The notes below the pieces were generated by a model, which did not search any database, was not told the DNA's origin, and was given only the letters and a program-made list of their open reading frames with translations. The translations under genes and the position numbers were made by a program. A stretch of 63,770 nt of DNA, the filler included, from Hyphochytrium catenoides (taxonomy: Eukaryota; Protista; Hyphochytriomycota): assembly GCA_900088475.1 (NCBI GenBank). It is 15 parts of 15 records of this genome, joined end to end, with 100 filler letters (N's around TTAATTAATTAA, not from the genome) between each part and the next. Parts side by side here need not be neighbours in the genome. Positions count along the whole stretch, not along the records: positions 23,597 to 40,075 come from FLMG01003238.1; 14 more parts are not named here. One strand, given 5' to 3'. Shown piece after piece: positions 23,481-42,400 of the stretch; positions within the stretch are counted from its first letter, which is position 1; every line of letters starts with the position of its first letter.

Positions 23481-24832
23481 ATTCCTTTCTCTTCGCNNNN
23501 NNNNNNNNNNNNNNNNNNNNNNNNNNNNNNNNNNNNNNNNTTAATTAATTAANNNNNNNNNNNNNNNNNNNNNNNNNNNNNNNNNNNNNNNNNNNNAGAG
23601 AGAGAGAGACAGAGCGAGAGGGAGAGAGAGAGACAGAGCGAGAGGGAGAGAGAGAAAGAGAAAGAGAGAAGAGAGAGAGTTGGTCTGTCAAGTTTTCGAA
23701 CCACTTCCCGCCCTATTTTCTCTGGTGTGTACGGTTAGCGGTTCTCGCTAACGGCTAGACATCTGAAGGTACGTAATATCTAGGGATTGCAGAGATAGCC
23801 GTTGAGGCCGTTAGTGGTTCATTGGCGGGAAAGGAGAGAAAAGGAGAGAGAAAGAAAGAAAGAAGGAGAGGAGAGAGAGAGAGGAGAAGAGAAGACAGAG
23901 AAGACAGAGGAAGGAAAAGAAGAATGAGAAGAGATGAAAGAGAAAAGAGGAGGAGAGAGAGAGAGAGGTGAAAGACAAGAGAGATGGAAGCGAGAGAAAG
24001 AAAGGAGGAGGAGAGAGGAGAACAATAAAAAGAGAACAGAAGAGAATGAGAGAAGAGAGAGAAAAAGCAAGAGACGAGACAGAACAGAAAGAGTCGTGCT
24101 ACTCTGCGGAGAGAGAGAGAGAGAGAGAGAGAGTAAAGAAGAGAGGAGAGCGAGGTTCTTCTCTACCTCGTCGAAGTGTCGGTCGTAGTAAAGGTCTAAT
24201 GAAGCCAGAGAGAGCTGCATCGTGCTAGGCCGAGACATCCTTCGAGCGCCTAACCATCGAGAGGTTGATGACTCTCATGTCAGTGTGTTCCTTCTTCTTC
24301 TCCCTTCTTACCTCTTCTTCAGAAAGCTGCTACGCGTCGTCGTCTGCTCTTGCTGCCGGCTCGGAGAGCCCACGCAGAGCACTGAACCTCTTCCTCCATG
24401 ATCATCTTTGACCGATGGAGAGACCGAGATGGCGTTGGCTGTGAGGAATCACTGCCACGTTGTTGAGGACTGAGTACCTGTGCCGTCCTCCATCCTCCGA
24501 AGCTGTTCCTGGCCGCTACTCAGGAGTCATCTCTGCTCCTCACGCACTGGATACGCCTCGTTCTGTCCATCCAAAGCCATCATCGCTCATCAGCAGGATG
24601 TAGACAGTGGCAAGGCCTAGAGCAGCACACGACCTGGCCAGTCTCCTCCTCGGCAGTAAGACTGGATGGCAGACGTCCTAGGCACAATCTTAGAGGTAAG
24701 GAGATTAGAAGAGAAGAACGGCATCCGCGACCCTCATCTCTGTCATCTGAAGAAGGATGAAGCTCTGCCTGGACAAACTCTGAAGAAGGACGGTGATCAA
24801 GGCTCAACTTAACGGGTCAGCATGCCAAACAT

Positions 24833-25124
24833 TAGAGCTTACTTCTTCCTCTTCAAGCGATGTGAGCGGAGGAGCTGCGGATGCCAAACAACTCTTCAAA
24901 GGCCAGCATTTGCCCGGCAAGGCCGCCCCCCGATAAGGCTAAGAAGGTCTACGTCCCGGAGGCCAGCGGACGTCTCTTGGTCTCAAGGTTAATAGATCTT
25001 AGCCTTTATCCTTGGCCTGCGCTGGACGGTCAATCCGTGCTCACAGCTTCTCTTTAACCTTCTGAAGAGTTGTTTGGCATCCGCACGCGGCTCACAAGGC
25101 TTGAAGACGAAGAACTAAGCTCTA
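24833..25124 (+). ncRNA. Long fold-back hairpin, candidate pre-miRNA/hpRNA
   Basis: 24876-24898 pairs perfectly with 25063-25085 (23 bp). Lower stem 24833-24867 pairs with 25090-25124 with few mismatches, and further inner stems are present. Strand is inferred from G-U pairs in neighbouring hairpins. Confidence 0.55.
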
Positions 25125-26350
25125 GACTATTGCTTTCATCGTAGGCAAAAGAAGAAAGACGTCTAGGATCGGCGGAGAGAGAGACTCTTCCTCACTTTGC
25201 CTGCCTCTTCCTCTATCATCTGCCTACCACTACGTTGGATTTGAAAGATCCACGCCGGGCTTGCAGGTCATCAAGAGTAGATCAAGAGCGGCCATCACCT
25301 GCTCAACATAAACTTCTTCTTCTTCATCACAGAAGAAGAGGACAATCGAGATGAAGCAGCTCCTTCCGACGTTCGAGCCTCTGCAGAAGAGCCAGTGATT
25401 GCCTTCTTCTCCTTCAGTTAACATCCACTTTATCCTGAGCGATAGGACTGATGCTGCTCCGTCTGATGAGCAAAGCTGAAGGATTCTCAGCAACGCGCAC
25501 AGGTTATAGCTATGTCTTTTGTTCCAACGGAGCTCCTGCGGCACCTTTTTCTTCACCAGCCTCTTTCTTGCTTCCTCTGTTCTTTCCCCTTTTTCTCCAT
25601 TGGCCAGGCCTCCAGCCTCTTTGTCTGTGGCACATCGTGTGTCTCTCTCTTTCTCTCTTCTTCTCTCTCCCACTGTCTGTCCGTCTCTCTCTCTCTCTTT
25701 GCCTTGCTGGCGCGTCTGTTTGACATGAGACAGGGCAACCAGTAGTGTTCTTTTCTGGTTTATAGCTTAATATCCTCCTTCTAAACTCCCACTTGCCCTT
25801 CTCTCTTTCTCTCTCTCTTCAGTCTCTTATCAAAACCTCTTTCTCCGAGAAGGAGGAAGAGAGAAAGAGGAATGGGAGAGAGAGAGCTAGGGAAGAGGGA
25901 TGATCCTACTTTAAGAGAGAGAAGAGAGGAAACTTGAACAAAATGAAGGGAAAAAAACTGCCTCAAAAACAAACGCCCACCAGGAAGTGACGACTCCTTT
26001 CTTCCTCTGTCTCCGTCTCTCTTTCGTTAGAGGCTCTTTCCTTCTTTCTCTCTTTTCCCTCTTTTCTCTCTTCTTCATCGCCCTACAAAGAAAATCCAAG
26101 TGATTCCCGTGTCTCGGCGGGGTAAAAATGCAAAACAGGAGAGTTTTTCTCAGTCCTCTCTCTCTCTTTCTCTCAATCTCTTTCCCTCGTAATAACTCAG
26201 AAGTTCCCCCAACTGCCCCTGACCTCGCCTTCACCTTCTCGTTGTCCTTGTCTGTCTTCCCAGTTGTTGCCTACTTCTCCCTTTGTCTCTCTTTTTCTCT
26301 CTCTCTCTCTCTTTCTCTCTTTCTGTCTTCTTCCTCCGTCTTTCCGTCCG

Positions 26351-27442
26351 TCACATAAAGAAATGCTGCTGGTGCAGTTGGTGCTGCTGTGGAGGAGGAA
26401 GACTGGAAGTTGGCGTCGGAGGTTGACCAGGAACAGAAGAAGAAGGAGAGACGCCCATTGTGGGCTGAGAAGAGAGAGGGAGAGACGAAGAAGACGCAGA
26501 AGAGAAAGAAGACGGCACCGGGAGAGACGAGGGAAGAGGATATCCTCCTCCACCTCCTCTTCCCGTCATTGTCCCTGTAGGAGAGGGAGAAGAGGGAGAG
26601 GGAACAGTGGTCGTGTTCTCTTCATCCACGGGGAGAGCCGCACAGGAGAGAGAAGAAGGAAAGCCTTGTCCGTCTCTCACGAGAGAGAGCATGAGACAGA
26701 CAGAGGTCGGCTTTCTCTTCAGCATCCACTTGAGCGTGGAGAAGATGACAGAGCTACTGCCCTGGACCAATTTCCTCAGCATTTCCTGAAGATGCGTGCT
26801 CTGGGTAGGGAGACAGAGAGAGAGAATGCTCTGTCCGCAGATGAAAGAGGGAGAAGAGACAGAGAGAAGAGTGAGAAATTGCTTATTGCAATCGAGAAAG
26901 AGTCCGTCAAAGGAGCAAATTGCCATAGGAACCGCACAATCTTGGAAGAGATTGTGAAATGTTGCGCTGGTACCGCGAATGTACGTGGAAGAGAGTTCTC
27001 CCGCAACTCTCTCTCTTTCTCTCTCTCCTCCTCCTCCTCCTCCTGCCCCTGAGGGGGCGGTGATATTTGCGGAATCACGGGGAGAAGAGGAAGGATTGGG
27101 GAGAGAGGAAGCAGGGAAGAAAGCTCCGGACGAAGAAGAAGAGAGAGGAGAACGCGCAGCTAACATCGCAGCTGGAGAACCGCCTGGCCAAAGTTGGGCC
27201 CGCGCGTAGAGGTCAGGGGAGAGGAGAAATGAGGGGAGAGAGGGAGTAAGACCCGGGAGAGAGAGAGAGAGAGAAAGAGAAAGCAGGTATGCGAAGTTTA
27301 ATAGGGAGAGAGAAAGAGAAAAGGGTAATTAGTGCTTCGTAGGGAAAACTTGAGAGGAGAATAAAGCGCAAAGCTTGAAGTAGAAACAGGGCCGAGGACG
27401 CAGTCGAAGTGAAAGAGAGCAGAAAAGAGAAACTAGGACAAT

Positions 27443-27490
<48 letters not shown>

Positions 27491-28799
27491 CCGTAGAAGG
27501 GAGACTAAAAACCATGCGAGACGGGCAATAGACACGACGATGCGTAGATAATAGAAAGGGAAGAGAGAGGGAGAAGGAACAGGGTGTAAAAACGACAGAG
27601 AGGAAGACAAAGCTGATCATAAAGAAAGAAGGATAGTAAGATGAAGAGGTATCGGAAGAACGGAGAGAGGCAGGAAAGAGAGAGATGGAAGAAAGAAAGA
27701 GAGAGACCGAGAGAAGAGGACAAGGACTAGGACTAGACAAAAAAAATGAGCTCTGCTCACCAAGAGTAACTTGCTGCTTGAAGATCTCCAGGTGGTTGAC
27801 TTTCCTCTCCAATTCTGCGACGTACTCCAGCGTGGAAGAGAGAATGTGATGTTTCTCTCTCCTGACCACGCAGCCCGCCGTCTCCAGTCTTCCTCTCAAT
27901 CTATGGAGGAGGTCGGTGATCCTCTTCATTCTCTTTTTCTCTCTCAGATTGTGAATCTGTTTCTTTGTGAGGGCTTTACTGTCTTCCCCTCCCTCTTCGT
28001 CGTCCTCTCTCTCTCTTTCTCTCCCTCCATCTTCTCCTCTAGAATTAAAGGAACGGGGAGTATCGTCGTCATTCCCGTCATTATCATCGTCAGAGTCCTC
28101 ACCATAGCCTTCATCTTCTCCTCTTTCTCTCTCTTTTCTCTCCTCAAGAGAGAGAGAGACACGACTGCCCTCTCCCCCGATAATTCCTTTCCTTTCCTGG
28201 TCTGAAGGAGCAGGAAGAGGGGGAGGCACCGTAGTAGAAGAGGAGGAAGATGAGGAAGAGCCTTTCCTATAGATTTTCCTATTTGGTGCACCGTTCTCTT
28301 CTCTCTTCTCTGCTACTCCTCCTTTCTCCTCGGTACTAGGCCTTCTGTCTCTTGAAACTTCTCTCTCTTCCTCTCTCTTATTTCCTTCTCTCTCTCCTTC
28401 TGTCACAACCTCCACTGGGCGCTTCCAAGGAAGAGGAGCAGCAAAGGAAGAGGCAGGTGGCGGAGGAGGAACAGAGGAGGGCTGAGAAGAGAAAGAGGAA
28501 AACGATGCGCCGGAGAGAGAAGGAGAGAAAAACATTCTCTCCCCTGCTATTCCTTGAGCTGGTGGATAGGCTGAATTAAGAGGAAAGGCTCCTCCTCCTC
28601 CTCCTGGTAAGCGAGAGAGAGAGAGAGAGGGAGAAGAAGAGAAGAGACTTCCTGCTGCTGGTCCTCTCACAGCTGAGGGAGGAAGATTCTGGAAGGAAGC
28701 GGCGGTGGGAACCATGAAGCCCGTCAGAGAGGGAGGAAGACGCCGAGAGAGAGGATTGTCTCCCAAAGAGAGAGACGCAGAGCCCTGTGTCATACTCAT
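26351..28799 (-). CDS. bHLH-PAS transcription factor (exons 28799-27761 and 27183-26351; start codon uncertain)
   Basis: bHLH KKQIHNLREKKRMKRITDLLHRLRGRL...REKHHILSSTLEYVAELE. PAS-like FHNLFQDCAVPMAICSFDGLFLDCNKQFLTLL. Phase-1 intron with GTGAGC donor and CAG acceptor. Confidence 0.85.
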
Positions 28800-28868
28800 A
28801 CTGGGCGGATGGGAGAGAGAAATGTTTGTGTGTGTGGGCGGGAGAGAGAGAGAGAAACACGAAACACC

Positions 28869-28918
<50 letters not shown>

Positions 28919-29056
28919 GAGAGAGAGAGAGCAAGAGCAAGCGGGAAGCAGAAATGGGGGAATGCAGGTGAGCTTTTAGCCGTGGAGCGGATTAAGCAAG
29001 GGAATGAGAGGAGGACTAATAACGGAGAAAACTGTGTGTGTTCGTGTGAGTGAGAG

Positions 29057-29088
<32 letters not shown>

Positions 29089-29436
29089 ATGTCGGCGGCA
29101 AGAGAGAGAGAGAGAGTCCAAATTTCCACGAGCCTATTGGCACCTTAACAAACCCCTGTTCTCTCTTTGACGAAATACAGCGCTCGCTCTCTCTCTCTCT
29201 CTTCTGCTCTTTCTCTCTCTCTTCCTCTCCATCTTCCATTTTCCATCTCCCTTCCTGAGGCTCGTCTCCTTACCTTCTATTGCCCATCAACTCCGCAGGC
29301 GGCTGTCGCGGTTGAGGTCCCTCTCCTCCCATCATCACACTCCCCAACATCAGAGCGCCACCACGGCGCCGGGAGAAGACACCGAGATCTGGAGAAAGAC
29401 AATGTCAGGAAGAGAGACCAAAAGAAGAAAAGGAAG

Positions 29437-29478
<42 letters not shown>

Positions 29479-29963
29479 AACACAGGGACAAGAGACAGAG
29501 AGAGGTGTTTATTAGTACTTTCTCTGTTTCAAATATCCCGTTCAGCCCCTTTTGCCATGATCTCACTATGTTTTCATAAACAAGAAGAAATAGAGAAGGT
29601 GACAGATGTATCCCGGAAGAGAGAGACACCGAGAGAGAGAGAGAGAAAGAGGGACAGAGAGAGAGAGAGAAAGAGGAAAGACAAGCATCTCCAACATACC
29701 TGTCCTTCTCCTCCTTTCTTCTCCTGTCTTTGTCTCTTTTTTCTGATGTTCCGTCTTCGGTCACCGCTGCTTTGCAAGAGGAAACCTTCCTCTCCTTCCG
29801 AGCTCATCCACTCCAGCGATTCTGCATCTTTGACTCTCTTCTTCTATTTCTCTTTTCTTCTTTTTTTCTATTGAAGCTTCCAATCCGTCTCGACCAAGTT
29901 TCTTGAGCTCCTACGGCAAAGAAAGAAAGAACATCGGAAGAGACCAGCCGGCTTATTAGCAAA

Positions 29964-30011
<48 letters not shown>

Positions 30012-30168
30012 CAATTGAGGACGGGATGCAGCAAGGTGAGAACAGTGACCAGGCCTTCATTCAAACAATTCTGCAGTCCAGAAGACAAAGAGATACTGAG
30101 CTCACACACGCAGAGAAAGTGGAAAAAGAGAAAGAACCAGAGAGAAGAGAGAAAGGGAGAGGAGATCA

Positions 30169-30210
<42 letters not shown>

Positions 30211-31764
30211 GTAAGGAAAGGCTCGGCCAGATTCACACCTTTTTCAGATTGATCACCCGCCAGCGCAACTGTGCCGCTCAGCGAACAAACGAGTCCCTCG
30301 ATTCCTTGATCTGCGTTCTCTTTCTCTCTCTCTCTCCTACTACAGCGCAGGATCAAGGGCAGAGAGAGAGAGAAACACAAAGAGGAAGAAGAGGCGGAGA
30401 AAGACGCACGAACTGAGATCTGCCGAGAAAGAGCGAGGGAGGAAGAGAGAAATGGGCCCTCGCCGGTCTTTCTTGTTTCCTGATCTGCTAGCCACACACC
30501 AGTAGTCTTTGAGAAGAGAGAGAGAAAGAAAGAGAGAGGAGATGAGTATGTGATGACAAGAGAAGAAGAGAGAAGAGTTTTTATGCCATACAACGAATGC
30601 TGCACGGCAGGTCTTCTTGGTCTGGCTTGAAGAATTCCAGCGCAATGAGGATGAGAAGCAGGAGAGAGAGAGAAAGGGAACAGAGAGAGAGAGAGGGAAG
30701 AGAGAGAGAGAGCAGAGAGAAAAGATAGACAGAGAACGTACACAGCTTGGTCTGGAAGGTAAGGATGGAGTCAGGAGAGACGAGAAGAGGTACAAAGGCA
30801 AGCAGGAGGGGTTAAAGGTTATGATGGGAGGAGCATCGTAGAGAGAAGCAGACAAAAACCGAGAAAGAGAGAGAGACAGAACAAAAGAGAGAGAAAAAGA
30901 GAGAACAGCTGAAGAGAGGAGAGACCCAAATCTCAGAGGAGGCAGAATGATCGAAGAAGGTGGTTGGTTGACGGTGATCAGCAGGCGAAGATGGCGAAAG
31001 AGCTAGCCATAAATGCTCCGTTCTTAACAGTTGAAGGGGAACCAGAACCGAGGAGAGAGAGAGAAAAGAGAGAGAGAGAGAGACAAGACTGTCCCCCTGA
31101 CCCAGTTGGTCCAGTCTCTAGATTTATTCCCTGGGCCGTTCTTCTGTCTCTTCTCTCCTCGTCCTTTTCCTCTTGTTATGTCAGTCTCTCATTCTTCTCT
31201 CTCTCTGGCGCGCTCTCTCGATAGCTCTAAAAAGAAAGAGCTCACTCCACTCTCTCTTTCCTCTTTTCTCTCTCTGTCTGCGTGGCTGCATTCTCTCTCT
31301 CTTCCAGATAAATGTGAGGCACAATGACTGTGACGTCTCCCTCGCTCTCTCTCTTGATTTCCGTCCTAGGGACCCTCTCGCGGCTTCTCCTTTCTTTCTG
31401 TCTTCACCTTTTTTGAGCTTTGGAATCTCTCTCTCTTTCATCATTTATGAGAGACGCTTATGCACAAGACGAGGTCCCACTCCGTCTCTCTCTCGCTCTT
31501 TGTGATGGTTTCTTGCTCACCCTCTCTCTCTTCTTCTCTCTCTCTCTCGTTTCTTTCTTTCTCTCTCCTTACTCCTTATTTTCTCTCTCTCTCTTCCAAC
31601 TCCTCTCTTGTATCTCTCTCTACGTCTCTCTCTCTTCTTTTACAAATAATTGCTGCAGGATGAGGAGCTGGGTCTTGGACTAAGCTGATGGATGTAAGGG
31701 CAACTTCTCTCTTTGGAAACCACGTTATAAGGCTGCCGTCCATCATCTTTCCTATAGGAAACTC

Positions 31765-31801
<37 letters not shown>

Positions 31802-31961
31802 TTTTTTTCTCTTACAATAGTCTTCCCCTCTGTGGCTTTGGTTCTTGATATCTCTTCCAAGACTCTCTCTTGCTTCGTGACTGCCTTTCGGGTGTCAGTT
31901 GAATTGATGAGTAAGCGCATGGTAGGAAAGAGAAACGAACAGAAACGCAATCACAGTAAAA

Positions 31962-32002
<41 letters not shown>

Positions 32003-32471
32003 GAGAGACAGAGAGGGAGAAGGAGGACCTCTTACTCTCTGCAGAGACCAAGAGAACGGAGGCGACGAAAGGGAATGAAGTAGACAGAGAGAGGAGAGAG
32101 AGAGAGGAGAGAGAGAGAGGAGAGAGAGAGAGAAGAGAGAGAGCGAGGGAGAGTGTACATAAGACGTCTCTCTCTTGTACAAATAGAGTCTAGGGCACCC
32201 AAAGAAGGAGGGACAAAGGCCTGACGGACACTCTCCTCGCATGTCCAAAGGCTGTGCACGAAGGCTCGGCTGTTGGGAGCCCTCTCTCGCCAGCTGACGA
32301 TCTGATTCTTCACAGTGCATGGGAGGAGAAAGAGAAAGAAATAAGAGAGAGAGAGAGAGAGAGAGTGTGATCAATGAGAGAAAGAGAGAGGAGGAGAAGA
32401 GAGAGAGTGAGAAGAGAGAGTAAACGAAGAGAGATGAGATACCTCACTAGGAAAAAACAGGTGAAAGAGGT

Positions 32472-32517
<46 letters not shown>

Positions 32518-35500
32518 AAAGGAGGGTGTGAAGGTCCAGGGGAAGGAGGTTGGAGGGGTGGGGGCGTTGGCGAGGAGCAAAGAAGCGGAACGTTTGTACC
32601 AGGAAACAGAGAAGACGAAGAATTCAAAGAAACAGCAGGAGAGAGTGCTAAACTAGATATTTGGATAAGGGAGAGAGAAGCTAACAGGATGAGACAGAGT
32701 GACAGAGGGAAGAAAAGAGAGAAGTAAAAGAGAAAGAGAGAGAGAGAGATACTCACGAGGAAGAGAGAGAGAACAAGAGAGAGAGAGATGAGAGAGAGAA
32801 CAAGAGAGAGAGAGAGATGAGAGAGAGACACAGAGAGAGTGAGAGAGAGAGAGAGAGAGAGAGAAGGGGAGAGGGAACAGAGAACAAGCACCTAATGATG
32901 GGATATCGACTCGGTTAAGACCTGCTTTTGCTCTATCGTCCCACCTAATTGTATGCGTAGTCACGTCAAATGGGCTCTTTCATGGGTTATTCGCCTTTAA
33001 AAGGGTTAGAGGTTAGCTCTAATGGTTTGAACAATCTCAGTCCGCCCATGCAAGAAATAAGCATAAAGGCGACTATGCTTTCCATCACCACATTCAATTG
33101 ACTCAATACTTCAACTCCTTCAATAAATGAATCTTTCCATAGGGCCTTCCACTGTAATAATTATAGGATTTAATTGAAAGGTTTCATGGTCCCTGAACTA
33201 AATCCACCGTTTCTGCACAGTTGCAGGTTGCAGCGATGAAGCCAAATGCTATTCTAAATTCAGGGGTTCACGTCTTATCATATTCGGAATATCTGCAGGT
33301 GTGAAAACGGTTCCCCCCACGTGTACAGCAGGGGGGACCGCTCACCCAACATGGCGGCCTTCACGATTCAAGGCCCTTCTTCATGGAGGTGGGTGGGCCC
33401 ACATCCGGAGGACCGCGGTGGGTGGGGAAGAGAGTGCAAAGAAAGGAAAGAAAGAGGGAAAATGAAGAAAAAGAAAGAAGAGAGCCGATGATAATATTGG
33501 GAAGTAAAGGAAGAAGAGTAGGACGAGGGAGATAGACAAAGAGAAAGAGGCAAAGCGGGGAAGGGAAAGATCAATAGACGAAGGGAGGCGAAGAGAGGGA
33601 GCTTGAAAGGAAGGAGAGAGAGAGAGAGAGAGGGAGAGAGAGAGAGGAGAGAGAAGGAGAGCGAGAAAGAAACTGTGTTGGTCACGTTTCCCTCCCAGCA
33701 GGTACAAGTAGTAGTTATATCTCACTCCTCTTTCCTCTCTTCCTACTGCTGCTGCTGCACGCTGATGTAACCCTAACCCTAAGCCCCACCTCTGCTCATG
33801 AGAGGAAGGTAACCCAAGAACAACAAACAGCAAAAAGGAGGATAAGCACAACTCAGCAGCCCGCGCGCGGGCTCATTCCACTGCCTCCTCATCACATCAT
33901 GCAGCAGCCAGCAGCAAAGGAACAAGCAGGAGGAGAAAGACATCGTGGAAAGAAGACTTCCTGGCGCGATGAGAAGAAGAAAGAAGACAGGGGGAGAGAA
34001 GAGAAGACGAAAACGACGGACAAAGAAAAGATCTGTTCATTATTATATAGCAACCTCCTTACTACCTTGGTCGTTCAGGCTCCTTCGAACTGCTTTGTTA
34101 TCCTCCTCCTCCTCCTCACACAGAGCTGATGCGTGTCCTCTTCTTCTATGTACTTTTGATCATCTGCAGTAAGTGGATGCTGCTCTTTTTTTTTTATCAG
34201 AGCTCGCGAGATAGAGATGGCTCTCATGATGATGGCGATAATGATGCCGCGCCTTCTTCGCTCCAAAGAGAAGCTTTGCGCTGCTCTTCCGTCCCTTTAT
34301 TATCCTTGCATCTGTCCGCCACCTCACGGTCTTCTCTTCTCTCGTCCTGTCGACTTTTCCTCTGTTTCCTCCATCATATTATCCCGCTGATGAGCAACAC
34401 GAGGGCCTGCTTCTTTGTTCCTACTATCTTCTCTTCTCTCTTATCACGTCTTCTGATCTGAAGCATGGGGAGAGAGTGGGAGAGGAGAGATCTCATCGAT
34501 CTAGACCCCGAGAGAGACTGCTGCCCGCTACGGGTGGTAGTAGAGGCGTTAGGGAAAGAAGAAGAGAAGAAGAAGAAGCGTATGCCTCACGACAGCGGTA
34601 ATAATGACTGGGAGTGAGCTTGCCAAAGCTCTGGATGCTGGGAAAAGGCGCAAATGCCATCTCCCTCAAGACTAAAGGGCCTCCGCAATAGCGGCGCCTT
34701 CTTGTTACCAAGAAGAGAAGAGGGAGAATGGCTGCCCAACGTTATTTATGGCTCACTGGCCTCAGCTTGACCGATGAGGTTGTCAGGCAGCAGTAGTGCC
34801 ACTGTCACCTCCTCTAGCATCGTGGTGTCATATCCCCGTCTCTTCCCTTTCATCGGTTGAAAGCTCATCAGCTTCTTCCCTTCAGACTGACGATCTGTTC
34901 AATGAGAAGCCGAGCGGGTCATGAAGGAGAGTGAAAGGTGCAACCTTTGTCTGCATCTTGGCTGGCCAGGCGACAGAGGAAGACTTAAGACGGAGCGCGC
35001 GCAATAGCACTTTCTAAGTAAGAGAGAAGTTTATCGAATTGACTATGGAAGGTAAGGAGAGCGTGTCTCTCCCAAGAGAGAAAGCCTAACTGATATTGCA
35101 ATGACAGAAGAAACAGGATCATGCAAGAGAGATTGTATATAAGCAGCAGCCGAGGAGCATGCGGAGATTAGGAAGAGAGCAAAAAGAGAGAAGAAAGACA
35201 GGAGAATCCTTCCTGAGAGCCACCTGTTGACCCTTCCAGTCAAGACTACTCGTGACTCTCAGAAGAGAGAAGAGCTGCATCTCCTACACTGACCGATCCT
35301 CATCCTGCGCTCAGCGTCGCCAGTGGGGATGTGTCTGCTTGGATCTTCTGAAAGATATGTGAGACAGCGATGGGACTAAGGTCATACAAGGGCGCCGCAT
35401 GATGAGGACAAGCTCTGTAAGGATAAACGAGGGACGAAAGGAGGAATGCACCACTGGCAAGGCAGCTCTTATTTATAAAGAAATGTGGGGCAGCGGTTGG

Positions 35501-36110
35501 TCTCTCTCTTCGAAAGTGGACCATCAATGCTCTCCTTCCGCGGGCAGGCAGGCAGGGAGAGGATTGACAATTAAGGACGAGTCTAGGAAAAGGGGAAGGG
35601 ACGACTATCGACTGCGCTCAGAATTTGAAGATCTCTCTCCCTACGTAAAGAGAATAAGCTGCCTGACAAAGGTGGATTGAGGAGAGAACTGAGAGAGAGA
35701 GATAGAGAGAGAGAACTTAGCGAGGTTATGCTTGGAGCGGTAAGAAGAAAGAGAGAGAGACGGGAAGAATAAAGACATCCTCCCTCTTCTTCAAGCCGCC
35801 TCTCGTTGACATCAAGGAAGCTCTCCCATGTCCTACACTTGGCTAACGCGGAGAAAGGCTGTCCGAGACACCTGCTGCAAGTGATCCCTTCCTTTCTGGC
35901 TCTTTTTTCTCTTTCTATTATTTTCCCAATTTCCACCTGCTGCGGGCGCTATTCTCTTCTTCCCTTGGCTCTTCCCTAGAGCTCTGAGGGCGAAAGAAGG
36001 AAACCGCTTTGGTCCAGGAGCTTCTGTCCTTCTTTCTGACCAGTACTTCGTCTCACTCCTTTGTCCTTCTTACTTCAAACTCAGGCATTTCTTCTCTCGT
36101 CGATCTCTCT

Positions 36111-36156
<46 letters not shown>

Positions 36157-36280
36157 TCATACCTTCCCCCTCTTTGTTCACCGAGGGACTCTCTCACTCT
36201 CTCTCCTCTTCCCTCGCTCCTTCACTTCTTCCTACCCAGTCCCATGTTCCACCTAGCTTGCCCAGTTCCCGGTCATTGGT

Positions 36281-39200
36281 CTATTCATCGTCACCTATTC
36301 GCACGATATTTTCCGTGGATTTCTTGAGCAGGTACAGCTCTTCTTCCTCCAGCGCGTCCGCGACGCCGAGGTGCAGATAGTGGGTCACACAGGACTCGAA
36401 GAGAATGTAAACGAAAAGAAGAGAGAGAATGAAGAGAATTGTCTCCCAGTTATTCATCGGGAGAAGAAGGCCCAGGAGAAGAGAGAGAGAAGAGAGACCA
36501 TCCAAGACCCACCAGGCCATCTTCAGCCAATAATGCGGATCCTCTCTCGAGGCAGGTTCGTAGCCCCAGTAATGCGTCCCACGGATGAGACAGATGATCA
36601 TCTTCGCGAGAGAGACGCTGCAACAGAGCAGCGCCTTCTCCACTGGATCATACTGGCCGTCCGCAGCCGGGTCAGGATGGACCGGGATGGAGTCGAGGCT
36701 GCGCTTGACTCCCACGCTGATGAGGAGGATGGAGGCGGCCAGGATCCAGTGGAGATAGAGATAGGAGACGCCTCGGAAGGAGCTGCGTCGGAGGGCGTGC
36801 CTGAGAGAGAGAGAGACAGAGAGAGGGAGAGAGAGAATGGGGGAGAGAGAGAAGGAGGACGAGAGAGGGACAATTCGGGGAAGGGAAAGATGATGGAGAG
36901 GGAGAGAAAGAGAGAGACAAAAAAAAAGAGAGAGAAGAGAGATCAGAGAAACAGAAGGGGTTAGGAAAGAGGCAGACAGACAGACAGAAACTAGAGAGAA
37001 AAGCGTGAGAGAGAGGGTGGGAGAGGGAAAGAAGGGAAGAAGGAAAGGTAGAGATAGGAAGCGAATGGTGGGTCCGTGGTCTAAGTCAATGTGTGACGAG
37101 AAGAAGAGAGAAAGACTTTAATATGATTAACGCAGAGAGGGAGCATGGAGAAGAAATGGAGAGAGAGAGAGGAGGGGGGAAGAGAGAGAGAGAGCAGTCT
37201 GAGTGCTCAGCGGGCTCAGAGGTGGGGAGCACGTACTGGTCTTTTGGCGGGGAGCCGAGATAGTACTGGAGACAGATCAGGTAAAGGATGGCGCTGGTCG
37301 GGGAGAGAACGTTCACGAGCAGAAGATAGAAGTGTAAGGGAGAGAGAATAATTAGCTGTCTTTCCTTGGTCAGAAAGAGCATCAAAGGTGAGGAGTGACG
37401 TACACCAGAGAAGCAAGAAGAGAGAGAAGAGAAGAGAGAGAGAAGCTAAAAGGGAGAAAAATGCAACTCTACTACTAAAAAGAGAGAGAGAGACAAAGAG
37501 ACTGGGACAGGGAGAACGAGAGGCAGAGACAGATGAAGAGAGGACGGAGAGCCAGGAAAAAGGAAGAGGAGAAGAGGTAGAAATAGAGATCGAGGAAGAG
37601 AAAAGTGACCTTGTTCTCCTTTCGACGATACAATCAGACCAAAAAGAGAGAGAAACATAAGAGCGGGAAAGAGAGAAAGGAGAAATAGAGAGAGAAACAG
37701 ACAGAGAGAGGAACAGATAAAAGAAAGACAGAAAGAGAAAAAGACAAAGAGAGGGAGAAAAAAACAAAGAGAGAGAGAGAGAGAGGGAGAGAAAGAGCTC
37801 CTCCGTCCGACGACTTACAAGCTTCCAAACAAGACTTTGGGATAGTTCCGCTGAAAGTGAAACTTCCTGGTAGTGAGGGCGACGAAGCTCTCTCCTAGCG
37901 TTAACATGATAAAGCAGCCGTGTCTCTCTTCCGTGTGATCGATGTGAACAGGGATACGAGCCGCTTTCTCCGCGCAGAGAGCAAAGAGAGGAATCACCAG
38001 CGCGTCTACCACAGTCACGGCGATGAGAAGAGAAAGTTGAGAGAAAGGAGAGAGAGAGAAATACGCGCAGAGAGAGAGAAGAGAGACAATGGCTGCATGC
38101 AGAGCCATGAGAGAGGATTGGAATCGAGCGCGCTGGACGTAGAAAGAGACGATGAGATACTTGGTGAGCAGTCCCAGGCGGGCGACGAAGAGAGAGAGAG
38201 AGAAATACTGCAGCATGTCGAGACCGTCTTTCGTGAAAAGAACCATGCCTAACACGCCTATCGGTGATGGAGAGAGAGTGTGAGAGAAAGGGAAAGCAGA
38301 GTGAGAGACCGAGAGAGAAACAGAGACCGAAGGAGCCAAACAGAGAGAGGGGGAGGTAGAAAGAGAGGAGCGCGAGAGAACGACTTTAACAAATGAGCTG
38401 AGAAAGAGAACGGGTGGGCTGGAGAGAGAGAGAGAGAGAGAAGGGAAAGAAAGACTGGATTTTGAAGAGAGCGAAGGGAGAGGGAGAGAGGAGAGAGAAT
38501 AGGCCATCATCCGGGACTTCCAGCCCAGAAACATGATCGGGGGAGAAGAAAAACGAAAGAAGAGAGCGAGGAGGAGATACGAGAGAGCGGCACATAGCGA
38601 CATCACAAGTGTGGAACAGAAAGTTGGTTGCAAAGAGAGAGAGAGGGATAAGAGGAAAGAGAGAAAAAGATGGCCTAATTGCGGGAGAGAGAAGACAGAG
38701 AGCAAAGTGAGAGAGGAAAGAGAAAAGAGAGCCTGACCTGCCATGTGAAGGAAGAGAAGTGCTTGGAACTGCAGCGTGTCATCAACGCCAAAGCGTGTTC
38801 CATAGTCGAGGACCCTCATCCACATCCACCAGAAGAGAGAGAAGAGAAGAAAGAAGACGCCGAGCCCCTCCCAGCAGAGATGTTTCGAGAAGAGATCCGT
38901 CAGCTGCGAGGCACCCGCGACATAGAGAAGATCATAGTAGAGCTCGATCCAAGACGCCTAGTAGAAGAGAGAGAAGAGACAAGAAGAGAGAGAACAGACA
39001 AGAAGAGAGAGAAGAGAAAAGAAGAGAGAGAGATTGGCACAGAGAGAGAGACAGAGAGAGAAGAATGAGAAAGAGAAAGAGAGCGACAGAGAGACAGAGA
39101 GACATTTCATAAAGATGCAATCAGCTCCCACGCCGACTTGGTGTCTCCTCTCTCTCTCTTGATTTCAAGCTCCTTCTTTTCTCTCTTTCTCGTTACATTT

Positions 39201-39450
39201 CTCCATTGTTGTTCCCAACTGTTCTTTCCCCTGGTCTGAAACCTATCTCTTACTGTCAATACCCCCAGTTCCTTCTCTGACTAGCCAGATGCAAGACTCT
39301 CTCTCTCTCTCTCTCTCTCTCTCTNNNNNNNNNNNNNNNNNNNNNNNNNNNNNNNTCTCTTTCCTCTCTTACCCCGTGCTCGGAGTCCACGTCCCAGTCC
39401 ACCTTCAGCCGAGGTGGTCCCCAGATCCTTCGCCAACTCAGCTTCGGCAT
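36281..39450 (-). CDS. LtrA (low temperature requirement A) family membrane protein, multi-exon
   Basis: The spliced product gives HG-ASWIELYYDLLYVAG, YGTRFGVDD, HTEERHGCFIMLTLGESF and QHALRRSSFRGVSYLYLHW, all LtrA-type motifs. Confidence 0.85.
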
Positions 39451-42400
39451 GTCTCTTTCTTCTGAGAAAGAGAGATTTCCTTCTTCCTTTCTCCGTTTTA
39501 CAAATCTCTGTCTGGAGGAGGAAGAGGTAATGATGATCGGAAGCTGCAGGAGAGAAGAGAAAGCAGGAAATGAACATAGAGAGAGAGAGAGAGGAACAGT
39601 GGAGGTGAACGGAAGGGGATGGCAAGACGATATTGGAGAAGAAGAGAAAGAGAGAGAAAGAGCACCCTCCTGCTGAAACAAAGAGAAGAGAGAGAGAGGG
39701 GGCAAGAGAGAAAGAGAGGGGGGGCGACGAGAGACAAAGCTCGAAGTTGCCTCTCTTTTTTCCTCTCTTTTCTCCCCGATACAGACGCAGCTGTCTCTCT
39801 GAACACGAGATAGAACAAGCGTTATGCAAGTCCTTAGAAGACAGGAAATGACAGCGAAGGGATGGACAGTGGAGAGAAAGAAGCAAGGAAGAGGAGAGAG
39901 AGGAGAGAAAACGAGAGAGAGAGAGGAAGGGGGAGGAAAGAGAGAGAAAGGGGGAGAAAAGAGAGAGAAAAGGACAATAAGAGTTGAAAGAACAGCTCTT
40001 GAAATGGTGTCAGAGAGGGACGAAAGAACAGAGAGAGGAAGAAGAGCAGGAGAGGAAAAAAGAGAGAATGAGAGANNNNNNNNNNNNNNNNNNNNNNNNN
40101 NNNNNNNNNNNNNNNNNNNTTAATTAATTAANNNNNNNNNNNNNNNNNNNNNNNNNNNNNNNNNNNNNNNNNNNNCGAGGACCGACCGTCAACACGACTG
40201 AGGTAAATGTTTTCCATGTTGCAATCGAGGAGGAGGCTCGAACAAGCCCTGAACTGGTTTTAATAAGTAGCTAGTTATGGCACATACAGACGACAGCGAC
40301 GGAAGGGGTGCGGGGCATGCATGCAAGCCCAATGCTTATACTTACTTGTGGAATGATTAGCTTACCATCAACAAGTAACCTTGCGCGTTTGGTTCATGCG
40401 GGCAACAAGCTTTGAACTTTGTGCACTTGGTTGTGACGGCAGCGTTGATATATCCTATTGGTTATAACTATTATGCCAGACGGGTATATATAGTGGGATG
40501 ATTCCTGATCAAGTCCATCACCACACCTTGTTGTCGGGCACTGTCCCTGCTGCTGCTGGACTGAGAGCAATATACAATACAAAGGAAGACGCTGCAGAAG
40601 TAAAAAGAAGAGATCATCAGAGCGACGAGGAGTAGTAACGTCTCTTTCTTCTTCCATCTTCAACTCTTCTGCTGTCTAGGGACAGCAGACTTCATCAATT
40701 GAACATTCAGCGTTGTAGTAGTGCCCAGGAGGAGTGTTCGAGGAGATGGTCGTCGCCGCGCCATGCCTATCTATTCCCATCGCTCGCTCCAGCTCTCAAG
40801 ACAGAGAAGAAGAAGAGCTCGGGCAGCAGCAGACGCCAGCTTGTTGCAGGTGCTTGCTGCTGGTGTTGGAGAAGGAGGAGGGCTCCTCCTGCAGAATAAA
40901 AAACATGCAAAGAAGAAAGAAACGCTCCATCAAGCTGGGGGGGCAGCTTCAGTGTTGCTTTGTTTATTTATGAGTTTGTACAGTTTTTTGATGTATACTC
41001 TCTTCTCTCTCTCATAGGCTCATAGGCCCCAGAGCAAACCACCACAAGTTAATAAACGCCGAATTTCTTTTTATTTTTTAAAAACAAGATAAAACGACTC
41101 TCTCTCTACTACTGAAACAAAGGCTCCCAATTTATAATCGCCAAATTAGCGTGTCTAATAAAGCTCTAATAAAAGCCCAACTTAACACACTAAAAAATTG
41201 ACACTGTAACGGACATCTGTAGCGTTACCGGCTCTCTGTTGCGCCTTGATAACAGGTGGACCAGCCAAGACAGCTCGAGAGAATAAAAAGTTACAGCGAT
41301 CTTCTAGGAATCTCTGCTGCTCGCTCCCTCATCAGCGAGGAGGAGGGGACGATGATGTGTCGTCTCCACCACCTGCTGCAGTAGGAACTAGCAGCTTTCT
41401 ACCGACAGTCTTCAGGATAGAGCAGAGCAGCTCCTTCTCCTCCTCCGGAGATGACATCAGGCAGTTCATTCGACCAAGGAGGAGGGGGAGGAGAGGGGAG
41501 GGAACAAAGAGGGAGCAACTGGGACAGAAAGAACGAAGAAGCAAGAAGAAGGCCCACCGCCACCCTTCTCCTTCTACCTTCAGACAAAAGCAACAAACAA
41601 ACAGCAGCCTGCAGAGTGGACAGTGAGCGAAGCTTTCTTCTCCTTCACCCTTATCCTCCTTCCTTCCCGCCTCACTTTGATTTGCAGTATCCAATAACCT
41701 GTTTGTTGTTGGGCTGCACAGACCATACAACAGCAATTGATGTGTCTTGATAGCGTAAACATCAGAGAATCAAGGCACGGCAATAAGCAGGGCAAAGCAA
41801 CATCATCAAACCCTTCACTATGTTAACTTGGTCATACTTAGTAATAACTGACGCAACTTATCTTCATGGCAAACTACGTTGCTTTCTTCCCTCTGTCATA
41901 AGCATCACCCACCAGCTATTACTTCTTGACAACAGAACCCCTATTCTTCTACAATCTCTTCAATCATGATGGGGAAGACGATGAGTATGTTTGCACCATC
42001 ATCATACCAATGGAACAACACTGATCATCTAATGTTAACAACAGTCCTGCCACCAAAGGCTAGCATGTCTTCTTCTGCTTGTATTACTACGTTTCTGGCT
42101 GAATGAAGAAGGCTGTAAGTCTTAGGGAGCAGTAGCAAGGTCTGCCTCAGCTGCCTGTGACGCAAAGCCATCGCTAGTCTATCCTTTTTACCTCCAACAA
42201 GCATTGGCCAGTTTTCTACCTCCTTGCGTTTCCATTGTCGTGGGTGGTGGAGGGTGGGCGGCTACGTCAGGTGCTACCTCCAAGAACAGAAATTTGAACT
42301 CTTTCAATTACCAGTGACGTCCTACCGCCACGAGGAACGACTTTGCAGGGTACTCGATTAACTCCTAACGCGGTTCAAGAGGCGCAGAATAAGTTAACAG

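Follow-up and report, generated by a model that had tools for sequence, protein, structure and literature searches.

A 292-nt inverted duplication with a near-perfect 58-bp stem as a plausible source of hairpin small RNAs

Description

An inverted duplication at positions 24833-25124 of the window (the whole 63,770-nt stretch of DNA that was analysed, along which all positions count) forms a 292-nt fold-back of non-coding DNA with a G+C content of 53%, and its duplicative origin, the geometry of its fold and its uniqueness within the 16.5-kb piece that carries it (23597-40075) are demonstrated here. The reading that we lean towards, with limited confidence, is a decayed inverted duplication whose transcript, if one is made, Dicer would cut into heterogeneous hairpin siRNAs; the hairpin is a plausible, not a demonstrated, small-RNA source. 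The element is one well-formed inverted repeat of a kind that most eukaryotic genomes contain, and whether it is a regulatory hairpin, a decaying duplication or a transposon relic is a distinction that cannot be drawn from sequence alone. Should small RNAs come from the stem, it would offer a clean, single-copy entry to RNA silencing in a barely sampled eukaryote.

Geometry of the fold-back

The outer arms, each 66 nt, are identical at 56/66 positions (85%), and the stem totals 58 bp (31 + 23 + 4), interrupted by four mismatched positions, one 8x4 internal loop and one bulge. The parts of the element, none of which is assigned to a strand, are as follows.

24833-25124, no strand: whole inverted-repeat (fold-back) element, with a minimum free energy of about -150 kcal/mol on either strand, the best fold of the piece and the sole copy in it
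24833-24867, no strand: lower stem, 5' half, pairing with 25090-25124 (31 bp, four mismatched positions)
25090-25124, no strand: lower stem, 3' half, pairing with 24833-24867
24868-24875 (8 nt) versus 25086-25089 (4 nt), no strand: asymmetric internal loop, in the minimum-energy structures of both strands
24876-24898, no strand: perfect 23-bp duplex, 5' strand (100% inverted repeat)
25063-25085, no strand: perfect 23-bp duplex, 3' strand (100% inverted repeat)
24899-24902 with 25058-25061, no strand: 4-bp continuation of the helix beyond a 1-nt bulge at 25062
24899-25062, no strand: interior, 164 nt, 56% G+C, a weakly structured multiloop
About 24932-24944 / 24995-25008, no strand: residual co-axial inner inverted repeat within the interior

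An initial annotation had described 24876-24898 as the exact reverse complement of 25063-25085, in complex sequence and not microsatellite, with a basal stem below it in which all mismatches are symmetric, and the analysis bears out each of these points. The core repeat is exact over its 23 nt, no chance match to it is expected (0 in 100 shuffles, at up to 3 mismatches), and its sequence is complex. The basal arms, 35 nt each, are 89% complementary, with 31/35 positions paired; the four positions that differ in this lower stem are all transversions, giving symmetric C.C, C.C and G.G+A.A oppositions on the + strand. Differences between the arms of the stem are few in number and clustered, and at the internal loop the alignment of one arm with the other contains a 4-nt indel plus substitutions. 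Every 21-nt register of the core duplex is free of mismatches, and lower-stem registers have at most 4, all symmetric.

Folding energy

Folded as RNA, the 292 nt reach -150.2 kcal/mol on the + strand (z -11.7, 0/200 shuffles as good) and -151.1 kcal/mol on the - strand (z -10.5), and as single-stranded DNA they reach -83.7 (z -12.2). The hairpin is retained when 601 nt of context are folded, and it is the lowest-energy segment among 634 windows of 300 nt scanned across the 16.5-kb piece. The next-best of these are GA/CT low-complexity pairings and not complex sequence, and the hairpin is the sole long inverted repeat of complex sequence in the piece. Its energy index (MFEI) is 0.96 at 53% G+C; this value and the 292-nt length fall in the range of plant precursors, and both would be the same for any long inverted repeat.

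Origin of the inverted repeat

An inverted repeat composed of 23 perfect base pairs and a 35-nt stretch at 89% cannot arise by chance, and it is therefore securely the product of a duplication. The interior carries a second and weaker trace of symmetry. Folded alone, 24899-25062 has a z of -1.9 on the + strand (5/200 shuffles as good) and -0.6 on the - strand, and the minimum-energy structure shows it as a multiloop whose longer 3' side carries small side hairpins. Within it lies the inner pair at about 24932-24944 / 24995-25008, perfect over 10 bp and longer if a 1-nt bulge is allowed, whose axis is 10 nt off the outer axis. A co-axial inner repeat of this kind (10 bp perfect, at most 15 nt from the axis) occurs in 0.3% of shuffled interiors, and the palindrome trace in the interior is non-random. 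The extension of the rod by further pairings above the duplex, as described earlier, is weak, and the interior is a multiloop and not a rod.

Because the interior retains this co-axial 10-bp trace, the element was probably once palindromic over its full length, and substitutions and indels have since eroded its centre; an unrelated core flanked by two terminal repeats is probably the poorer account when set against a once-full palindrome. A still larger palindrome that would include the GA-rich left and CT-rich right flanks was considered and rejected, the flanks having no colinear matches of complex sequence.

Selection and strand

If differences are placed at random in the 66 columns, a clean run of at least 23 arises with P 0.14 when the ten differing columns are independent, and with P 0.54-0.69 when the differences are counted as the four or five mutational events that the ten columns appear to be. 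At these probabilities (0.14-0.69), the perfect 23-bp run is expected from so few differences between the arms, and there is no sign of selection on the duplex. A strand signal is likewise absent. The mismatches in the stem are transversions, and consequently there are no G:U pairs that would favour one strand; the + and - strands fold equally well, and therefore a transcribed strand cannot be proposed.

The initial annotation also drew attention to the U with which both strands of the duplex begin. This is true of the duplex as delimited, but it follows by construction from a blunt T...A palindrome, and real Dicer products carry 2-nt overhangs. Three apparent arguments for a miRNA are in this way removed: the perfection of the duplex, the U at its 5' ends and the rod described above it.

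Possible hairpin siRNAs from a decayed duplication

In the sequence of events that we tentatively prefer, a local inverted duplication created a palindrome of about 290 bp, the centre of which has probably decayed by substitutions and indels while the outer 66 nt of each arm stayed 85% alike. Transcription of either strand, alone or as the tail of a neighbouring mRNA, would then produce a 58-bp near-perfect RNA stem, which a Dicer-type enzyme would be predicted to cut into mixed duplexes of about 21-24 nt, resembling hairpin siRNAs and not one miRNA/miRNA* pair. If the hairpin lay within an mRNA, cutting the stem would destabilise the mRNA in cis as well, a consequence reported for 3' UTR hairpins of Chlamydomonas. 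We count in support of this reading the extreme stability of the fold on both strands and its persistence in context, together with the single copy in the piece, the lack of a 3-, 4-, 8- or 9-bp duplication at its borders and the lack of any ORF longer than 58 aa across it. The stem, near-perfect over 58 bp, is clearly longer than one small-RNA duplex, as in hpRNA and inverted-repeat siRNA loci, and its few, clustered differences, with no mark of selection, would fit a young hairpin better than a refined miRNA. A perfect duplex within a 58-bp stem is commoner in young hairpin-siRNA loci than in a precisely processed miRNA.

Hairpins of this general form are known from other systems. Drosophila hpRNA loci and Arabidopsis IR71-type loci share with the element a single-locus inverted duplication, a stem much longer than one duplex and few mismatches; they differ in that their stems are usually hundreds of bp long and their targets or parent genes are known, whereas the element has 58 bp and no visible parent or target. 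In Chlamydomonas, DCL3 cleaves hairpins in UTRs and introns, and the outcome is miRNAs, siRNAs or only destabilisation of the mRNA (PMC4817775). The DCL3 precursors of Chlamydomonas reinhardtii, which lie in UTRs, introns and non-coding RNAs, are like the element long fold-backs with an extended near-perfect stem (PMC4817775), and in both cases the hairpin is non-coding sequence by or within a protein-coding unit, so that effects in trans and in cis are conceivable. The C. reinhardtii loci differ in being backed by small RNAs, mRNAs and Dicer mutants, whereas the element is known from its sequence and its membership of a 3' UTR is putative; C. reinhardtii is moreover a green alga, and by no evidence is the host of the element one.

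A possible inert palindrome

A doubtful alternative keeps the same origin by inverted duplication and gives the element no RNA role at all: it would be a slowly decaying DNA palindrome and at most a site prone to cruciform formation or rearrangement. Much of what was found is compatible with it, namely the missing sign of selection and the 23-bp run that chance would leave given the differences, mismatches that are transversions and not G:U-compatible transitions, an equally significant fold as single-stranded DNA and a neighbourhood with no targets. The interior has decayed as well, and such decay is expected for palindromes that are destabilised at the centre. What speaks against inertness is location and length. 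The region around the element contains genes, one of which ends 1.2 kb away, and read-through transcription is common near gene ends; a stem of more than 50 bp, if transcribed, would normally be diced given RNAi, as organisms with RNAi normally do with transcribed stems of that length.

Copies, flanks and a possible transposon origin

An unlikely explanation, on present findings, is that the element is a copy of a MITE or foldback transposable element inserted downstream of a gene, with any hairpin RNA a by-product. Small size, long terminal inverted repeats, no coding capacity and a position at a gene end are typical of MITEs, and the element has all of these: it is 292 bp long, its terminal repeats are 66 nt (56/66 identical), the longest ORF crossing it is 58 aa and it lies near the end of a gene. 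The flanks of the element read CCAAACAT and GACTATTG. A TA bounds it at both ends and could be a 2-bp duplication, as left by Tc1/mariner-type elements, yet this TA itself lies within the palindrome and for that reason is uninformative on insertion. Target-site duplications of 3, 4, 8 or 9 bp are absent from these two flanks.

Searches for relatives also weigh against a transposon. No second copy of the 23-mer occurs in the window at up to 3 mismatches, and blastn at word size 7 against the 16.5-kb piece returned only self and arm-to-arm matches, and neither another copy nor a fragment. Exact searches for the 23-mer in collections of metagenomes, viral genomes and prokaryotic genomes came back empty, and so did a search of the metagenomes with a degenerate pattern of the terminal repeats. 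The element is not A+T-rich (G+C 53-56%), and the palindrome trace in its interior is less usual for elements in which terminal repeats flank an unrelated core. Compared with Stowaway- and Tourist-like MITEs and with miRNA hairpins derived from MITEs, it shares a length of about 300 bp, the absence of coding sequence, long terminal repeats, nearness to a gene and a miRNA-like fold, and it differs in having no informative target-site duplication, no other copy seen in the piece, no A+T-richness and no canonical terminal motifs.

A possible miRNA gene

The initial annotation had likened the fold-back of about 290 nt to long plant or algal miRNA hairpins, and as a statement about structure the likeness is real (292 nt, MFEI 0.96, mismatch-free 21-nt registers). 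On that basis the element could be a true plant- or algal-type miRNA gene, from which Dicer would excise one dominant 20-24-nt duplex that loads into Argonaute and acts on a target elsewhere in the genome; we consider this improbable. The 2018 criteria of Axtell & Meyers reportedly limit a precursor to one fold-back no longer than about 300 nt, its two duplex strands lying on opposite arms. By these criteria the duplex may contain up to 5 mismatched positions, of which no more than 3 may be in asymmetric bulges, and must enclose no secondary stem or large loop; both strands must be sequenced as 20-24-nt RNAs with a 2-nt 3' overhang, precisely and in replicate libraries. The element is 292 nt long with one dominant stem on either strand, and the registers of 24876-24898 / 25063-25085 have no mismatch or bulge. 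In algae, a miRNA precursor can be a long hairpin, whether it lies in a UTR, an intron or a non-coding RNA (PMC4817775).

Several points count against the miRNA gene. Searches with the covariance models of Rfam 15 gave no match at the gathering score, for miRNAs or otherwise, and none over 24833-25124 even at E up to 5; a tRNA search gave none. The sequence of the hairpin core had no match in the literature that was searched. No near-complementary target for any 21-mer of the stem, at up to 4 mismatches, is present in the 16.5-kb piece. The internal loop sits directly under the 23-bp perfect helix, and the base-to-loop rule of plants places the first cut 15-17 bp above an internal loop; such a cut would miss the ends of the helix and fall within it. 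Finally, several overlapping products would be favoured by a stem of 58 bp. The sequence itself gives a miRNA no advantage over the other readings, be it a hairpin-siRNA source, a transposon relic or an inert palindrome: there is no strand signal, no sign of selection, no curated family match and no near-complementary target in the piece.

Young plant MIRNA genes are said, in the model of Allen et al. from 2004, to arise by inverted duplication of a target gene. The element resembles them as an inverted duplication that is still near-perfect and has decayed mainly outside one duplex region, and differs in that its arms have no similarity to any coding sequence within the piece.

The bHLH-PAS neighbour

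The hairpin is located in an island of about 1.3 kb of complex non-coding sequence and starts 1,227 nt downstream of the stop of a minus-strand gene of the bHLH/single-PAS type, whose exons were searched separately and not as a joined protein. Its layout is a bHLH ORF, then an ORF with a single PAS domain, then a short tail.

26351-28940, - strand: transcription-factor gene with bHLH, single PAS and a Ser/Pro/Gln-rich tail
27807-27965, - strand: bHLH (Pfam HLH, E 2.9e-7, above the curated cut-off)
26618-26962, - strand: PAS domain (three PAS models, E 5e-4 to 5e-3, all just below their cut-offs)
26351-26353, - strand: stop after the short Ser/Pro/Gln-rich tail (end of the ORF)

Word-index protein searches found no relatives of the bHLH and PAS ORFs. 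A single PAS domain with a short C-terminal extension is described for the RITMO1-like bHLH-PAS proteins of diatoms, dinoflagellates, ciliates, cryptophytes and others (PMC6600994). Judged by its predicted domains, the neighbouring gene has the architecture described for RITMO1-like proteins.

ORFs that cross the hairpin do not exceed 58 aa and have no credible family match. Next to the hairpin, an ORF of 147 aa at 25230-25673 (-) was considered as coding and rejected: it belongs to no family, BLASTP showed no likeness to PAS, and its recognition in a protein atlas is low. AATAAA, ATTAAA and TGTAA do not occur on either strand between 24200 and 25800. Because the hairpin lies more than 1.2 kb beyond the last recognisable coding ORF, its placement in the 3' UTR of the bHLH-PAS mRNA is only a possibility. 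We give little credence to the further proposal that a young miRNA-like gene sits in an extended 3' UTR of a RITMO1-like bHLH-PAS mRNA, where Dicer cleavage would yield small RNAs and at the same time determine, in cis, how much there is of a putative rhythm or clock regulator; if true, it would extend the 'UTR hairpin' mechanism of Chlamydomonas DCL3 to an unrelated eukaryotic group and might be an example of a bHLH-PAS transcription factor controlled in cis when Dicer cuts the tail of its transcript.

Sequences resembling the arms upstream of the hairpin

A 21-mer within 24705-24728 matches the 3' strand of the core at 16/21 positions, with the blocks GAAGAG and GGCATCCGC exact and, between them, six central positions of which five differ. 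The layout would look like a bulged target or mimic site for a small RNA from the 5' arm, with an alignment no better than that of shuffles. The 10-mer ATGCCAAACA at 24822-24831 is identical to 24881-24890 of the core, which is not above shuffled controls. A third, diverged copy of the arm upstream of the hairpin, made up of 24705-24728 and this 10-mer, was rejected, 42/500 shuffles giving a local alignment as good.

The rest of the piece

The piece at 23597-40075 is eukaryotic, with a G+C content of about 50% and introns that have canonical GT-AG borders and (CT)n polypyrimidine tracts. It is very dense in GA/CT microsatellites throughout, and uninterrupted purine or pyrimidine runs of at least 15 nt make up about 24% of it. 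Opposed GA and CT tracts give many long hairpins of low complexity, for example 29186-29258 with 29405-29477, which rival the candidate in raw folding energy; a naive hairpin scan of the genome would be flooded by them. A run of 31 N at 39325-39355, inside the piece, is an assembly gap or a masked stretch, and ORFs that cross it show X.

A second gene was recognised in the piece, coding for an LtrA-like membrane protein.

36368-38957, - strand: LtrA-like (PF06772) membrane-protein gene of at least three exons, by tblastn with distant homologues
About 38957-38736, 38288-37818 and 36802-36368, - strand: exon-like blocks of this gene, by tblastn

The intron from about 37817 to 36803 (-) has a GTAAGT donor and a (CT)n-AG acceptor. 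With the LtrA-like exon as query, an exhaustive HMMER search retrieved only 36 representatives at E up to 0.001, 27-40% identical, and a word-index protein search with the ORF was without matches. Those representatives that are named come from chlorarachniophytes (Partenskyella, Bigelowiella, Amorphochlora), a green alga, an ichthyosporean, an oomycete, a choanoflagellate and Rigifila. This is the only neighbouring gene that gives database matches, the closest of them at most 40% identical, and from such scattered relatives at 27-40% it follows that the lineage is poorly sampled or that its proteins are absent from the collections searched.

At 23680-23835 a small island of complex sequence lies between GA tracts and contains the short inverted pairs TTCCCGCC/GGCGGGAA, which we take to be E2F-like, and CTAACGGC/GCCGTTAG, which are presumably Myb-core-like. 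As RNA the island is not significantly structured (z -1.2), and it may be a promoter region.
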